From contig BQFW01000008.1 in NCBI GenBank assembly GCA_020891255.1, positions 310,001 to 374,000 of the forward strand: DNA of 64,000 nt, written 5' to 3'. Position 1 is the stretch's first letter. Each line of letters begins with the position of its first letter. Below, one piece after another: positions 29,264 through 40,647 of the stretch. The notes under the pieces were generated by a model that searched no databases, was not told the DNA's origin, and saw only the letters and a program-made list of their open reading frames with translations. Source of the DNA: Entomortierella parvispora E1425. Lineage: Eukaryota > Fungi > Mortierellomycota. Made by a program: the position numbers and the translations under genes.

Positions 29264-32715
<3,452 letters not shown>

Positions 32716-32780
32716 TCTAACTGCGTGCACCTGGGAACGACAAACGAGGATGAGTAAGGTCAAGAACATGGACTCACACA

Positions 32781-32784
32781 CATG

Positions 32785-32819
<35 letters not shown>
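32781..32819. repeat. (CA)n microsatellite
   Basis: Near-perfect CA run just upstream of the AlaRS ATG, inside a predicted 5'UTR intron. Confidence 0.95.
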
Positions 32820-32821
<2 letters not shown>

Positions 32822-33184
32822 ACACAAGAACAAAGGTGGAGGACATACAGGGAGGATATGAAGAGGGGCGGATGGGGGAAGAGAAAGAGCAAGAACAAAA
32901 AGAATAAGAGGACCAGCCAGGAGCGAGAAACCATGGCAGCAGGCGGTGCGCATGGCCAGAGCCCACCTGGACAGCAGGCAGCAGGGCGAGTGGTGGTGTT
33001 TGTGGGTGGCTTGGCATGGCTCACCTTGTGTCAAATCGTATTCATTCTGCACGTGATCCTCAATTTGCCACCAATTTTTCATGTGCCGCCTCATCCTTTT
33101 TTCCACAGCGCAGATGAGAAAGTGTCCACATCCCATCTTCATCCTCCGCCGCCGCCGCCGTCGCGCGTCATTCTTCTGCGCCTC

Positions 33185-34783
33185 ATGGACCAAGTCAAGG
33201 AGTACCATGGAGCTCGCATCCGAACATTACTCAAAACGAATCGCGTCAGTAACAGTCATCATGCCATCAACAACGACGTTTCAAGTTCAGATACAGATGG
33301 CCCAAACACTCCCAAGACCCTCAGCCCGGTCGAAATCCCAGAGATTCTTTTGATAATCCTGGAGTATATTCCAAGATACACCTACTCATCTCTCTGTCGC
33401 GTCTCGAAACTCTGGCACAGTCTCATCCAACCGCTAATTTGGGGGTCGCTATCCTGTACGGACGAAGTGGGCCTGCGGCTTATTGCGCCCCACTTCTCAT
33501 CCAACGTCGATTACATCCAAAAGATCGAGTCTATCCTCTATATGGAGCAGAAGTTTAGAGAACTATCATGGCTGCCTCGCCTTTTCGTGGATGGCAGGAC
33601 ATACCCCAACTTGACTACGATTTGTTTAGACGGATTTACAGAGTCGCCAGAAACGGGAAGCAAAGAGTCCTATTTATTGGGTCTTGTTCGATGCTGTCCC
33701 AATCTCACGGAAATCGACCTCCGCGGGTGCCAGCTTTTGGTGTCGTATCCGCTCGACTTTTTATACGAATGTCCGCGTCTGCAATCATTGTACTATGACT
33801 ATCCTTGTTGGTCAGATTCCATTGGCGTCCCTCCCTGGGAAAACAGTCCGCTCCTTTCGGCCGGAAAGCATTGGCCCAACCTTCGACATTTGCATATCAA
33901 CGATTCTTATGAACTCGGCTCTCGAGCTTTGGAGCTGTCCGAAATTCTTTTGAAAAGCTCATTTTGCCTGGAGTCTTTGTGTTTGGGAGGCCGCGCTTGG
34001 ACACAAAACGTATTCAGGCATCTGGCGACTCCAGGACCAAGGTCAGAGGGAATCACTAAATCACAGGAGGCAGTTGCGTCGGAACCCACAAAGTCCATGG
34101 TGTCATCCTTAAAGCTGCGGGACTTTCACTATTCGAACATTGACTTTGAAGAGATGATGCCCAGATTGACAAAACTAGAAATTATGGAACACTATGTAAC
34201 CTCCGGGATTAGCAAGCAGCTTGGTGAAGGCATTTGCGGGCGTCTAGTGGAGCTGGCCATTACGGAGAGCCATCTAAAGGAGTTGTGGGCACCTTTGAGC
34301 AACGCCGACCATCTCCGAAAACTGGCAGTGAGACTTTTGTTGGGTAACGGCCTGATGGACTGTTCAAGTGCAGAGTTGCCGCGATGGACATGCCTGGGGC
34401 TACAAGAGCTGTCACTTGGCTGGACAGATCGAAAGACACGCGACTCAGAGTCCAACCTGAGTTGCTCATCGATGGCCCTTTGGGAGGAGATTGCCAATCT
34501 TAGACAGCTGAGAGTCCTGCGACTTCTGAATTGCAAGGTCATCAGTGATGAATCGGTCACCCCTTGTCCTCTTGCGATGCTCAAGGATCTCGACCAGCTG
34601 CGGGAATTAGAGGTGACCCATTCTTCCCAGTGGACTCGGCAGGAGGTGGCGTGCGTAGCCGAGTTCTGGCCAAGATTAAGTCTCTTCAGGTACCATCTCT
34701 CCAAGATGAGCATTTTCCATTGGAGTTGGCTTCGACAGATGCGACCGCTTCTGTCCATGGAAGACATAGAGAAAATCAAATAA
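33185..34783 (+). CDS. Intronless F-box protein with degenerate LRR-like repeats
   Basis: F-box-like EIPEILLIILEYIPRYTYSSLCRVSKLWHSLIQPLIW followed by LxxLxL repeats (CPNLTEIDL, CPRLQSLYY, WPNLRHLHI) and WTCLGLQELSL; first plausible ATG 33185. Confidence 0.8.
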   Translation: MDQVKEYHGARIRTLLKTNRVSNSHHAINNDVSSSDTDGPNTPKTLSPVEIPEILLIILEYIPRYTYSSLCRVSKLWHSLIQPLIWGSLSCTDEVGLRLIAPHFSSNVDYIQKIESILYMEQKFRELSWLPRLFVDGRTYPNLTTICLDGFTESPETGSKESYLLGLVRCCPNLTEIDLRGCQLLVSYPLDFLYECPRLQSLYYDYPCWSDSIGVPPWENSPLLSAGKHWPNLRHLHINDSYELGSRALELSEILLKSSFCLESLCLGGRAWTQNVFRHLATPGPRSEGITKSQEAVASEPTKSMVSSLKLRDFHYSNIDFEEMMPRLTKLEIMEHYVTSGISKQLGEGICGRLVELAITESHLKELWAPLSNADHLRKLAVRLLLGNGLMDCSSAELPRWTCLGLQELSLGWTDRKTRDSESNLSCSSMALWEEIANLRQLRVLRLLNCKVISDESVTPCPLAMLKDLDQLRELEVTHSSQWTRQEVACVAEFWPRLSLFRYHLSKMSIFHWSWLRQMRPLLSMEDIEKIK

Positions 34784-36902: not shown

Positions 36903-38504
36903 TCAACTAATACGAACATTGGTATCGACTTGTCGGATCTGCACCTTTTTTTCTGTCAGAATCCCCTTCAAGGCAGTATCCATGGTGGCCAGTGGATGTA
37001 ATCCCCCAATCACCGAATGCAATCGTGGCCACTTTTCAATCATCCAATGGACATCGTCCTCTTTCAGTTCTTGAGGCACATGATGCAAAATCAGAGTACG
37101 AAGGTCTCGCCAGGTTTCCAAGCACCCAAGGGACCCTGTCAGTCGGAACTGCAGACTGGATTGGCCATAGATCGGACGCAGTTGAAGATACTGCAAACGC
37201 ACAAGAGTGCTTAATCGCTCCATAACCGCTTTTTGAGTCACATCTACATCGTCATTGTCCACATTATCCACATTACTTGTTTGAATTTCGATCGCGACCA
37301 CCAAACGCTCGAGACCCAAGCACACCCAAGGACGAGCATCCTGCATCATATCCCCACTTCGAATCATATAAGCGGTGAAGCTTACGAGCCCAGTCAAGCT
37401 GCATAGCATGTCTTGCACCACTGAACTCCCTGCAAAGGCAGAGACATCTAGGATCCGAAGCGTTGACCAGTGATGTTCTCGAAGTAGTTTCCAGGTGTCG
37501 AAGCCAAACTGAGCTCTAGGCAGATTCATTTCCTGCAGCTGCAGACTCGCTCCTGACTCCAAGAACCGTATCAAAATATCTTCATTTCGGTAATCAATGC
37601 CAAGGGTAATGTTCGTGAGCTTGGGGCAGTATTGAACATGTCGTTCCAGCTCGGGCTCTAGCAGTTTTCCTGTGAAGGGCTCCGGATTGACAAACCAGAT
37701 GAACGTCTCCAGATCCGGACAAAATCTCAAGAGAGCGAGGTGGTCCTGTAGCCTTTCAATCCCCTGCAGGAGTCGTAACTCGAGCGTCTTGAGCTTCGTG
37801 GGTCGAGAAGGATCTTCCTTTGAGAGCAATTCGTACAGGCTTAGCGGTTGCGACGGATGGTGCTGAGGCTGTTGCTGATTGTCATTGTTCTCTTGCTCTT
37901 TGTCGGTAAACACCTTGGATGAAAAGCTGGCTTCAAGAAGGCGCAGACAGGTCAACCGGGACCATAGAGGCCAACATACATGCCAATTCCTGTGAGAGAC
38001 GTGCAACTTGGAGATGGAAAGCGATTCCAAGGACGGACAGGAAGCAAGAGCCCGCCACAGCTCGTCGCTTCCTTCCAGAGCCTTATTCCCGGTAATCATT
38101 TTGGAAAGATTAACGTGGATGAGGGTAAGTCGATGGCGATAAACCAGGTTGGCCCGGTCGTTGACATGGCCGATCAAGGCCAGGCGTTCCAAATTTTGAC
38201 AGTGGAGTTCGTCGAAAAAGGCAGAAAAAGGGGTTGCCATGTCATCATAGCCATTGTGGTTGTTGCAGGTGAGGTCCTTGACGAAGTGGGAATAGCGAAC
38301 GAGGAAAGCTCTGCGAAGTTTGACGTTGGGGTAGCTGAAGGTGGGAACGAGAGCGAGGGTTCGCCAGAGGAGGGGCAGGCAGGTCAGGCTCCACGACCTG
38401 GACACACGAGAGCAAATGGCAAGGTCATGGCGGGTCAGAAACTGGACAATGTGGCTCCTGATCTCGGGCAGGTCGAATGGATGTGACATGGAAGTTGAGG
38501 ACAT
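36903..38504 (-). CDS. Intronless F-box protein with degenerate LRR-like repeats
   Basis: HPFDLPEIRSHIVQFLTRHDLAICSRVSRSWSLTCLPLLW F-box; repeats CPSLESLSI, CPDLETFIW, CPKLTNITL; PWVCLGLERL and WPRLHSVIG motifs shared with the other F-box gene; ATG 38504. Confidence 0.85.
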   Translation of the reverse strand: MSSTSMSHPFDLPEIRSHIVQFLTRHDLAICSRVSRSWSLTCLPLLWRTLALVPTFSYPNVKLRRAFLVRYSHFVKDLTCNNHNGYDDMATPFSAFFDELHCQNLERLALIGHVNDRANLVYRHRLTLIHVNLSKMITGNKALEGSDELWRALASCPSLESLSISKLHVSHRNWHVCWPLWSRLTCLRLLEASFSSKVFTDKEQENNDNQQQPQHHPSQPLSLYELLSKEDPSRPTKLKTLELRLLQGIERLQDHLALLRFCPDLETFIWFVNPEPFTGKLLEPELERHVQYCPKLTNITLGIDYRNEDILIRFLESGASLQLQEMNLPRAQFGFDTWKLLREHHWSTLRILDVSAFAGSSVVQDMLCSLTGLVSFTAYMIRSGDMMQDARPWVCLGLERLVVAIEIQTSNVDNVDNDDVDVTQKAVMERLSTLVRLQYLQLRPIYGQSSLQFRLTGSLGCLETWRDLRTLILHHVPQELKEDDVHWMIEKWPRLHSVIGGLHPLATMDTALKGILTEKKVQIRQVDTNVRIS

Positions 38505-39051
38505 GGCACAGACATGGAGAGATGGTAAAGAGCAGCGAGCAACGCGAAAGAATGAACAAAAATCTTCCATCAGCCACAACCTTTACCCTCATTCGCGCAT
38601 GCACAACTTTCGGAGTTCACCAAGCTCATCATGCACCCATCTTGATCTGCCTGTTCGCCGAGGAAAATCGGAGAATACTCCCTCGTCCAGCACAACCGCA
38701 TCCCTGGCAAAGCATGCGAAAACAGCTACGCGACCCTCTTTGTTTCGTTGCAGTAACGGCCCTTCCTGAGACTGACCACCCAATTCCACAGCATGGCGTG
38801 TCTTCGTGTCTTGGAGGCCTGCACTGCTCCAGCGCGACCCCTCAACAAACGAGGCGTAGTCTTTTTTTTTTTTTTTTGCTGCGGTAGTCCAATATTCAAT
38901 CTTGTGTTCCACGGAGCAAAAGCGAAGAGCGCGAACGAGACGCGCGGTGGTGGAAATGGGTCTTGCCTAGAACGCGAGGGGTCAATGTGAGGGTGTTGCT
39001 GGGCGCAGAAAGGAACAAAGACGCAGCACATCTTTGCCTTTGAAAAAAAAG

Positions 39052-39156: not shown

Positions 39157-40647
39157 ATGTTTGCCACCAACTCCACTCCTTCTGCTGTTCCTCCTCCTCA
39201 GGGCTTGAACCGTGCCAATGATGAGGTCTTCCAGAAGCTCAAGGCAAACTACCTTTCAGAGTTCAACTTCAAAGGCATCCGGGTCTCGGCGACGCCGCTC
39301 ATTCCAAGCGTCCTTCGCGGACAGCAGACCGAGCTCCCTGTTCTCTTTCAAATCTCGGTTGGACAGAGATCTGGCGCTGATGAGAAGGATCTCGTCCGGA
39401 CCCCCTTCAACATCTGCTTGGTGCTCGATACCTCTGGATCCATGTCGGGCTCCCGTCTCGATGGCTGCAAAACGGCCATCAACGCCATCATTGGGCAGTT
39501 AACTCCTTATGACACCCTGAGTCTTGTCACCTACAGCACCACTTACGAGACCGTCTTTGTCGACTGCAACCAGTCTCACTCAAGCCATATGCTCGAATCC
39601 GTGGAGAAGATCAAGACCACTGGCTCCACCAACTTGCACGGTGGTCTCGAGCTCGGGGTTGAGACATTGAAAAGGAGCATCAGCAAGGATGAAGCGGCTC
39701 AGCAAAAAGGAATGGATAAGAACAAGAAAGCGACAAGAAAGGCCAACCGTGTCTTCTTGTTCTCGGATGGCCTGGTTAACGTCGGTATCACCTCTGCGGA
39801 TGCAATTATGGCCAACGTCGAGAGCTGGCTCAAGAATACCGATATTCAAATTTCGACCTTTGGTATTGGCGACGGGTACGATGAGAAGTTGATGACGGCC
39901 ATTGCGAAACACGCCAATGGTGACTCGTTCTTTATCGAAACTGTGGAGGACATTGAGGATTTGGTTGCGAAGGGTCTTCGAGGTGTCTCCAACATGGTTT
40001 CACCTTTGGCCACCTTGACCCTTCGAGGATTGGGGGACGCAGTCATCAAGGATATTCCTGGCCATGACTTGACAGACACCCCTGGTCAGGTCACGGTTCG
40101 TAATCTGAGGAGCAATGGACTTATTCAGTTGGTTGTCAACCTGGATATCCGCGTGCCAGGACTTGACGAGTTCTCGGTCCACGACATGGATGATGTGGTG
40201 GATTCGAGAAACATTCTTGGCTACTCTATCAGTTTGGGAGAAGATGAACAGACGTTTGTGGACTTGGCCGACTGTGTGGGAATGAAGGGAACGTTGGCTG
40301 TCAACTACACTGTGGACAGCTCCTTGGTGGCCAAGGACAAGCAGCACGACGATGTTGTGACCTATCTAACCATTAAGAACGCCTCCAAGATTGACAAGGA
40401 GGTGGTGGAACATTTGGCCAACAACAGGACTGCGGAGGCAATTGCGGCCAAGAAGAAGGTCATTGCCATGTTTGAGGGCATTGAATCCAAGGATCGACGA
40501 GGATTTGCTCAGCGCTTGAAGGGTCAAGCTGAGCGTTTGGTTCAGAACCTGGAAGCATCTGGTAACACCAGATATGCTCAACAGATGTGCCATCAGCAAC
40601 AGCAGGAGGAGTCGGATGATGACATGGGATTCGGACTCTTTGACTAA
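39157..40647 (+). CDS. Intronless von Willebrand factor type A (MIDAS) domain protein with a C-terminal ribosomal P-protein-type tail
   Basis: MIDAS DxSxS in ICLVLDTSGSMSG, Thr in GSTNLHGGL, Asp in VFLFSDG; ISTFGIGDGYDEKLMTAIA; ends QQQQEESDDDMGFGLFD* (40606-40647). Confidence 0.9.
   Translation: MFATNSTPSAVPPPQGLNRANDEVFQKLKANYLSEFNFKGIRVSATPLIPSVLRGQQTELPVLFQISVGQRSGADEKDLVRTPFNICLVLDTSGSMSGSRLDGCKTAINAIIGQLTPYDTLSLVTYSTTYETVFVDCNQSHSSHMLESVEKIKTTGSTNLHGGLELGVETLKRSISKDEAAQQKGMDKNKKATRKANRVFLFSDGLVNVGITSADAIMANVESWLKNTDIQISTFGIGDGYDEKLMTAIAKHANGDSFFIETVEDIEDLVAKGLRGVSNMVSPLATLTLRGLGDAVIKDIPGHDLTDTPGQVTVRNLRSNGLIQLVVNLDIRVPGLDEFSVHDMDDVVDSRNILGYSISLGEDEQTFVDLADCVGMKGTLAVNYTVDSSLVAKDKQHDDVVTYLTIKNASKIDKEVVEHLANNRTAEAIAAKKKVIAMFEGIESKDRRGFAQRLKGQAERLVQNLEASGNTRYAQQMCHQQQQEESDDDMGFGLFD

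Follow-up and report, generated by a model that had tools for sequence, protein, structure and literature searches.

The C-terminal tail shared by the ribosome's P-stalk proteins is among the most conserved short motifs in eukaryotes, and GTPases that act in elongation, termination, and initiation share it as a handle, as do GCN2 activation and toxins of the ricin and Shiga types. To our knowledge, it has so far been regarded as a purely ribosomal feature. What, then, is this tail doing at the end of a von Willebrand A (vWA) protein? The question is raised by a gene in a 64,000-nucleotide stretch of the fungus Entomortierella parvispora E1425 (contig BQFW01000008.1, positions 310,001–374,000 of the forward strand), the whole of which we call the window. 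A first-pass annotation, made from the letters of the window, had proposed the gene product as a stalk mimic or decoy. Our analysis of the gene, its relatives, and its predicted structure indicates that the tail is an old, selectively maintained feature of a protein family spread over fungi, protists, and giant viruses, and that factors which bind the stalk are probably engaged by it off the ribosome.

A stalk tail on a complete vWA gene

The open reading frame (ORF) in question has 496 codons and a C-terminal end reading ...CHQQQQEESDDDMGFGLFD before the stop codon. Its parts, in window coordinates, are:

39157–40647, plus strand: stalk-tailed vWA protein, complete single-exon coding sequence of 496 residues plus TAA (uninterrupted translation; collinear orthologs)
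39277–39360, plus strand: N-terminal strands of a beta-sandwich that the vWA domain splits in two, residues 41–68 (AlphaFold2, AF2, strands 41–47, 51–53, and 57–68; ArnB topology, PMC12852372)
39406–39990, plus strand: vWA domain, residues 84–278 (PF00092; alternating strands and helices in the AF2 model)
39427–39441, plus strand: MIDAS (metal ion-dependent adhesion site) motif D91-x-S-x-S95, with T158 and D204 completing the site (conserved residues)
39994–40311, plus strand: C-terminal part of the beta-sandwich, residues 280–385 (AF2 strands across 280–385; Foldseek matches)
40348–40593, plus strand: four-helix bundle, residues 398–479, counterpart of the ArnB regulatory helical bundle (AF2 helices; PMC12852372)
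40594–40605, plus strand: QQQQ linker, residues 480–483 (translation)
40606–40644, plus strand: stalk tail EESDDDMGFGLFD, residues 484–496, an acidic run with a CK2-type serine followed by the hydrophobic GFGLF core
40645–40647, plus strand: TAA stop

The tail is identical at 13 of 13 residues to those of P0, P1, and P2 from the same genome, which holds one P0 gene (contig C6), two P2 genes (C3 and C4), and two P1 genes (C2 and C4), all with the identical 13-mer. The earlier claim of an exact P-stalk C-terminus on a vWA protein is therefore correct, and the ORF that carries it is uninterrupted. What the protein has in common with uL10 (P0), P1, and P2 is these last 13 residues, including the acidic run with its CK2-type serine and the GFGLF core, in agreement with the [ED][ED]SDDDMGFGLFD pattern of the P1/P2 family. 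In contrast to the stalk proteins, its body is a 480-residue vWA module without a dimerization domain, an Ala/Pro/Gly hinge, or an rRNA-binding domain. The Ribosomal_60s family (PF00428) matches over residues 482–495 at positions 75–88 of its 88-position model, scoring 18.7 bits against a cut-off of 28.1, and no other ribosomal Pfam family matches the protein. Thus the N-terminal helical dimerization domain of P1/P2 is absent by Pfam, which covers the model end only, and the tail comes after the helical bundle and QQQQ rather than after the Ala/Gly/Pro-rich hinge present in the genome's own P proteins, both as first proposed.

A degenerate DNA pattern for GFGLFD followed by a stop codon, run over the 38.9-Mb genome, matched P0, the two P2 genes, and the window gene only, and its reversed control gave 0 matches. 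Because the other matches are P0 and P2, the window gene is the only non-ribosomal bearer of this ending in the genome. In both P1 genes (L001 on C2, minus strand, and L002 on C4, plus strand), an intron of about 100 nucleotides, from locus position 1726, interrupts the tail's second Gly codon (…ATG GGA TTC G/GTATGT…AG/GT CTC TTC GAT TAA, slashes marking the splice sites), such that the stalk motif is spread over two exons.

The window protein aligns collinearly over its full length with 22 orthologs from the Mortierellaceae. Its start (MFATN...) and length match theirs, and therefore no intron is needed. The locus order—a GH16 gene upstream, the window gene, and a DUF1264 gene downstream—recurs on the contig of the closest ortholog, which is why we regard the chromosomal locus as stable. 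An assembly chimera or a hidden intron is ruled out by the uninterrupted ORF, the collinearity of the orthologs, and the syntenic locus, in keeping with the contiguous gene initially called.

An old motif, maintained yet drifting

The first-pass annotation had argued from codon usage that the tail is an older motif under protein-level selection and not a recent capture of a P-protein mRNA. On the codons it was broadly right, inasmuch as 6 of the 13 differ from those of the P2 tail, all synonymously; the GGA of the first Gly is common to both. The wider claim is substantiated by this synonymous divergence, by comparison with the ortholog P0002 (83% identity), from which the tail codons differ by 6 synonymous and 0 non-synonymous changes, and by tailed relatives at 25–40% identity in giant viruses and in supergroups other than that of the fungus. 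For the whole gene, the same ortholog gives a ratio of non-synonymous to synonymous substitution rates (dN/dS) of 0.138 at a dS of 0.67. Judged by these codon comparisons, the tail is under purifying selection. Recent capture or gene conversion from a P gene is ruled out by the six synonymous codon differences together with the presence of the tail in distant relatives.

Conservation of the tail among orthologs proved to be partial. Counting from the C-terminus, all 23 Mortierellaceae proteins keep D(-8) and G(-6), with only conservative changes at positions -5, -3, -2, and -1 (aromatic, aliphatic, aromatic, and acidic, respectively), and in several genera the acidic run has been lost and the aromatics have changed; the same positions hold in 24 representatives of the wider clade described below, which were selected for matching a strict motif. 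The relaxed consensus in the Mortierellaceae is D-x-G-[FWY]-x-[LIV]-[FY]-[DE], with the tail taking the form DMGFGL[FY]D in Mortierella sensu stricto, D[ML]GY[GR]LYE in Podila, and D[KR]GW[GS]IYE in Linnemannia and Gryganskiella. Two old paralog lineages behind the two tail types are ruled out by the Mortierellaceae tree, in which each lineage has a single gene whose tail drifts, and a duplication is confined to the E. parvispora lineage (99% support). The second copy (L021, C3:1010130–1011617, minus strand) is 67% identical to the window gene and has the same length and the same two ends as E. parvispora EMPS_02382 (P0008), to which it appears identical. This paralog has gained an N-terminal extension of about 110 residues rich in Gly, Pro, and Phe, and its tail has drifted (...QQAQKRDLGYGLYE, ending KRDLGYGLYE), while the window copy kept the canonical tail.

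Predicted fold

Pfam places the VWA domain at residues 85–270 (E 1.2e-16), and the MIDAS residues D91-T-S-G-S95, T158, and D204 are all present, so that the MIDAS-intact vWA domain with a QQQQ linker reported at first sight is confirmed. The Asp, Ser, Ser, Thr, and Asp equivalents are invariant in 15 distant tail-bearing relatives, T158 and D204 are invariant across the Mortierellaceae alignment, and all Mortierellaceae orthologs have a Gln-rich linker in this position.

An AF2 model built from an 18-sequence alignment reached a mean predicted local distance difference test (pLDDT) score of 85.6 and a predicted template modeling score of 0.82. It places helices at residues 398–421, 425–442, 450–468, and 471–486, and models the tail at a pLDDT of about 77, a moderate value at which the region is not fully disordered. 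Among Foldseek matches in the PDB, the best was 8s05 (E 3.5e-21), the archaeal ArnA-ArnB complex described as ‘an archaeal ortholog of the Sec23/24 core motif’, followed by 4fx5 (E 8.7e-18), 5a8j, an ArnB paralog (E 2.2e-17), and then ITIH1 and Sec24. With ArnB chains, about 450 columns aligned at template modeling scores of 0.54–0.70 and a sequence identity of 12–16%. In ArnB, the vWA domain splits an eight-stranded sandwich and is followed by a regulatory helical bundle (PMC12852372); the model of the window protein likewise shows a MIDAS vWA domain, sandwich strands on either side of it, and a C-terminal four-helix bundle. On this modeling, the fold is ArnB/Sec23-24-core-like, sharing domain order, topology, and MIDAS residues with ArnB/ArnE of the Sulfolobus archaellum regulatory network and with the Sec23/Sec24 core. 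There are differences nonetheless: ArnB is regulated by threonine phosphorylation in its bundle, whereas the window protein carries an added stalk-tail motif, and Sec23/24 has a zinc finger and a gelsolin domain, of which the window protein has neither. The nearest eukaryotic structural relatives of ArnB are the WAV3 RING E3 ligases (PMC12852372).

Inspection of the sequence, with no predictor run, showed the first 40 residues to be polar, with no hydrophobic stretch that would suggest a signal peptide or transmembrane segment. We picture the window protein as a cytosolic adaptor, in which an ArnB/Sec23-24-core-like body and a Gln linker would present the stalk motif as a free C-terminus; this picture is tentative, and in our estimation nearly as probable as its opposite. 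No ArnA-type zinc-finger/FHA partner is known for the protein or encoded next to the gene, the neighbors being F-box-like, GH16, and DUF1264 genes, though the rest of the genome was not searched for one.

Tail-bearing relatives in fungi, protists, and giant viruses

A profile search of 1.84 billion representative sequences retrieved 5623 relatives at E<1e-30, of which the best 150 were inspected; a tree was built from 149 representatives, leaving out the last 14 residues. In this tree, 31 of the 32 bearers of a P-type tail belong to a single set of 55 rows, and most of the remaining rows of the set have degenerate tails such as DMGMGLFD, DMGFDLFA, DLGYTLF, and DMTFGLTD. Of 53 members of the clade, 17 have MGFGLFD as their exact ending, and the C-termini of 24 agree with D-x-G-[FYWM]-x-[LIV]-[FY]-[DE]. 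Across the 15 distant tail-bearers, the D-M-G..L-F positions of the tail are invariant at an overall identity of 23–43%. Going by these sequences, the tail is ancestral to a clade to which roughly one in three of the 149 closest family representatives belong.

Tail-bearing members are found in genome annotations of fungi, namely the Mortierellaceae and the chytrid Borealophlyctis, and in the protists Nematostelium, Clydonella, and Phalansterium (Amoebozoa), Peranema and Lacrimia (Euglenozoa), and Fabomonas (an ancyromonad). Because the records of these six protists are assembled transcripts, a tailed mRNA exists in each. The viral bearers are Yasminevirus and contigs with the gene content of giant viruses, of which one encodes eRF1, Rpb5, DnaJ, and Mrr; a second a helicase, RNase T, and dUTPase; a third PTH2, TatD, and RINGv; and a fourth topoisomerase II and SerRS. 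In agreement with these viral sources, one Atlas cluster is 43% Nucleocytoviricota. IMG/VR holds a single full-length relative, from a metagenome-assembled giant-virus genome. Like a subclade of the tail-bearing clade (P0153, P0154, P0156, and P0139), that copy (L089:2429–3844, plus strand) has another acidic tail, whose last residue is aromatic (…GGMF.DDDDDW, …GDLFGGDDEDDW, and …FGAGDMDAGW).

Different C-terminal motifs, in many cases Y-x-K-R-R-x-S, are found in the 94 rows of the sister clade. In P0134, P0142, P0162, P0163, P0164, and P0195, for example, the terminal sequence is frequently H/Y-x-x-Y-x-K-R-R-x-S-x-x-Y, which resembles a basophilic-kinase site. Comparison of these endings suggests that, throughout the family, the module has at its C-terminal end a regulatory motif that can be exchanged.

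Such variation bears on an alternative in which the tail is a self-latch or polymerization motif that docks on the MIDAS or the bundle, either autoinhibitory or head-to-tail, and whose likeness to the stalk has no link to translation. It is established for vWA and integrin I domains that MIDAS sites bind acidic ligand residues, and ArnB is regulated through the same end of the protein (PMC12852372). A latch would sit well with the intermediate pLDDT of the modeled tail, with the short clade-specific motifs that follow the bundle in the wider family (the basic Y-x-K-R-R-x-S, acidic-W, and others), and with the drift in the Mortierellaceae, which fits co-evolution with a site in the same protein. 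However, a private latch has no need of a tail that, in viruses as well as in fungi, Amoebozoa, and Euglenozoa, keeps letter-for-letter identity to that of the ribosome even as the body diverges to 25–35% identity, and a fusion to a uL10-like region (see below) is left unexplained by it. We therefore consider a latch to be quite unlikely.

Fusions to RING, B-box, uL10, and L12

Some tail-clade relatives carry additional domains. RING and B-box domains lie N-terminal to the module in P0122 (Nematostelium), P0135 (Peranema), P0130, and P0133, a TRIM-like E3 layout, and a B-box alone is found in P0137 and P0027; the window protein itself has neither RING nor B-box by Pfam. These relatives resemble the RING-vWA E3 ligases of plants and fungi (WAV3), as well as TRIM-type ligases, in having RING and B-box before the module. 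TRIMs have SPRY or other C-terminal domains, not a vWA module, and we know of no stalk-like tail described for WAV3 ligases.

A second type of fusion is represented by P0165 (L018:1392–3965, plus strand), which lies on a metagenomic contig as one ORF of 857 codons with an even GC content. From its SHOCT-like start, the encoded protein runs through a uL10/P0-like region, a coiled coil, and the vWA module to the ending ...DADIGFGLFD. The uL10-like region matches residues 83–249 of P0/uL10 (phmmer E 1e-9, to many solved P0 chains) and PF17777, the RL10P insertion domain (1e-9). No further uL10-vWA fusion was found among 5.8 billion clusters. This protein raises the prospect of a ribosome-bound accessory, whose body docks on the ribosome or stalk and adds, or conditionally replaces, a factor-recruiting tail to give a specialized stalk. 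The P0165 region corresponds to the N-terminal and insertion domains of P0, which in P0 lie at the stalk base, and the giant viruses that carry the gene have translation genes nearby (eRF1, SerRS, and peptidyl-tRNA hydrolase). Against this, the fungal protein has no rRNA- or P1/P2-binding element visible to Pfam or the fold search, the uL10 fusion is a singleton, and the RING/B-box fusions point to an enzyme-adaptor role; we judge the accessory role to be improbable.

Bacteria offer a parallel. One Atlas cluster of 50 bacterial members has VWA in 100% and Ribosomal_L12 in 94%, thus pairing a vWA domain with the domain that contacts translational GTPases (trGTPases) in the bacterial stalk, the counterpart of the P tail. 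Kaur et al. (2020) had described an L12/ClpS domain inserted after vWA in bacteroidete conflict systems (PMC7159879). Those published cases differ, however, in belonging to another vWA lineage, which is MoxR-associated and has a beta-propeller, and the domain is interpreted there as a multimerizer (PMC7159879). PF00542 scans of 301 Myxococcota genomes (44 of them re-scanned) found no protein combining L12 with a Pfam vWA domain, nor did a word search seeded with the L12 domain find any vWA-L12 protein. About 44 of the 301 genomes did contain extra PF00542 matches, many of them in non-ribosomal proteins with the L7/L12 C-terminal domain, in forms that include four tandem copies in 391 residues, SUKH/SMI1 with L12, collagen and TSP3 with L12, TerB with L12, L12 with B-box, and a conserved family of 410–513 residues with an L12-like domain at the end (loci L058:529–1701, plus; L062:1492–3051, minus; L084:747–2054, plus; L087:659–2467, plus; L085:523–1803, minus; L078–L083; and L086). 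In the ESM Atlas, the structural neighbors comprise a diatom cluster and vWA proteins of bacteria, part of which are fusions with an FHA, Macro, or ADP-ribosylglycohydrolase domain.

Domain company of this kind is what would be expected of an immune decoy, in which the tail baits stalk-docking toxins or effectors, the vWA body (with RING/B-box in relatives) neutralizes or ubiquitinates the catch, and viruses protect the translation they need. The FHA-, Macro-, and ADP-ribosylglycohydrolase-fused relatives, together with the RING/B-box fusions, are typical of conflict systems, as is a patchy distribution that includes viruses, and L12 domains occur on bacterial vWA proteins and beside SUKH immunity-type domains. 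Tail peptides in free form inhibit depurination and bind to ricin A chain (PMC6162817), and at least one ribosome-inactivating protein (RIP) reportedly uses the bacterial L12 stalk likewise (PMC12737465). But a decoy must keep matching an invariant target, and the tail drifts in several fungal lineages; no toxin partner is known for the Mortierellaceae; and PF00161 (RIP) had no match in the genome, in a search that lacked a positive control (the control genomes gave no match). An immune decoy, which amounts to a special case of the bait model below with an exogenous reader, is in our view unlikely.

The tail as possible off-ribosome bait

The explanation we favor, tentatively and with a little less than even confidence, is that the protein is an off-ribosome adaptor displaying the stalk tail as bait for stalk-tail readers, be they trGTPases and GCN2 or stalk-docking toxins. 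The stalk tail, which carries constitutive phosphorylation, is bound by trGTPases and Gcn2, and its GFGLF core also by RIP toxins (PMC11624264). Because the motif is unchanged relative to the ribosome while the rest of the protein has diverged, it is probably read by the readers of the ribosomal tail: candidates are GTPases (eEF1A, eEF2, eIF5B, and the eRF3 type), GCN2, or ribosome-inactivating toxins that dock on the stalk. Away from the ribosome, the adaptor would bind a reader of this kind and link it to a ligand of the MIDAS face and helical bundle, with sequestration or scaffolding as the outcome for the fungal form and ubiquitination for the RING/B-box forms. Ser486, in an EESDDD context like that of the constitutively phosphorylated stalk serine, may tune the availability of the tail.

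That a free tail could compete with the ribosome is plausible because ricin A chain is bound by synthetic peptides of the P tail, and these prevent the depurination of ribosomes (PMC6162817). In these ricin and Shiga-toxin inhibitors, the last 4–11 stalk residues, off the ribosome, occupy the toxin's ribosome-docking site (PMC6162817), as the window tail might. The peptides are laboratory products, whereas the window protein is a natural, conserved gene product. Co-folding of the genome's own eEF1A (L025) with residues 440–496 scored 0.00 with no controls run, and so counts neither for nor against binding. The genome has two apparently intronless eEF1A genes (L025:1435–2817, minus strand, on C11, and L026 on C13), with frames of 460 and 473 residues.

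Several points weigh against the bait model. We infer both the binding of a partner by the tail, from sequence, and expression in E. parvispora, from conservation alone. The tail lacks the acidic run and has altered aromatics in Linnemannia, Gryganskiella, Podila, and others, as well as in the E. parvispora paralog. Drifted forms such as DKGWGIYE and DLGYGLYE are at odds with strict mimicry, since P0, P1, and P2 of the same genome are canonical; the constraint on the vWA tail is therefore real but looser than that on the stalk, and the vWA-protein tail has been free to drift in some lineages. Accordingly, the partner of the tail may be lineage-specific, or the protein itself. Finally, the uL10 fusion is one metagenomic sequence, and the bacterial vWA-L12 cluster is known from an Atlas entry alone. 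The stalk-mimic idea with which the first-pass annotation began thus emerges circumstantially strengthened by the uL10/P0 fusion, the RING and B-box sister clade, and the bacterial vWA-L12 proteins, but weakened in its strict form by tail drift.

Broader than the bait model, and held with distinctly less confidence, is the possibility that these proteins represent a shared, undescribed class of off-ribosome stalk mimics in eukaryotes and giant viruses: ArnB-like vWA adaptors, some of them TRIM-like E3 ligases and one fused to uL10, which would act as immune decoys against stalk-dependent toxins and effectors or as controllers of free trGTPases and GCN2, with bacteria arriving at the same design via L12. 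In the paper library searched, we found no published account of a protein outside the ribosome that naturally bears the stalk tail, nor did any appear among 40 of the 62 titles of papers containing GFGLFD, which agrees with the original remark that no described function was known for such a fusion. While fold and motif are each known, their conserved combination, its spread among giant viruses, and the E3 and uL10 fusions appear to be undescribed.

The family provides a competitor for stalk-tail readers, or a sensor of them, that is natural, amenable to genetics, and built on a non-ribosomal scaffold. It has ties to E3 ligase modules, and giant viruses that tamper with translation have acquired it. 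It becomes testable whether the cell regulates or guards its off-ribosome pool of stalk-binding factors, and how giant viruses use the host GTPase-recruiting system. The natural variants GFGLFD, GYGLYE, and GWGIYE, in turn, offer a means of asking which tail positions matter.

Genomic neighborhood

The surroundings of the window gene that are kept on the contig of the closest ortholog are not kept in Mortierella sp. AD011. An identity with Dictyostelium Vwa1/VWA5A (VIT-vWA) was considered and rejected, as that protein has another architecture and Pfam detected no VIT domain in the window protein. A Dictyostelium cytosolic VIT-vWA protein is known to work with an F-box protein (PMC10539598). 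Just upstream of the window gene lie two F-box-like ORFs, the nearer at 36903–38579 on the minus strand, divergent from the window gene, and the other at 32663–34783 on the plus strand.

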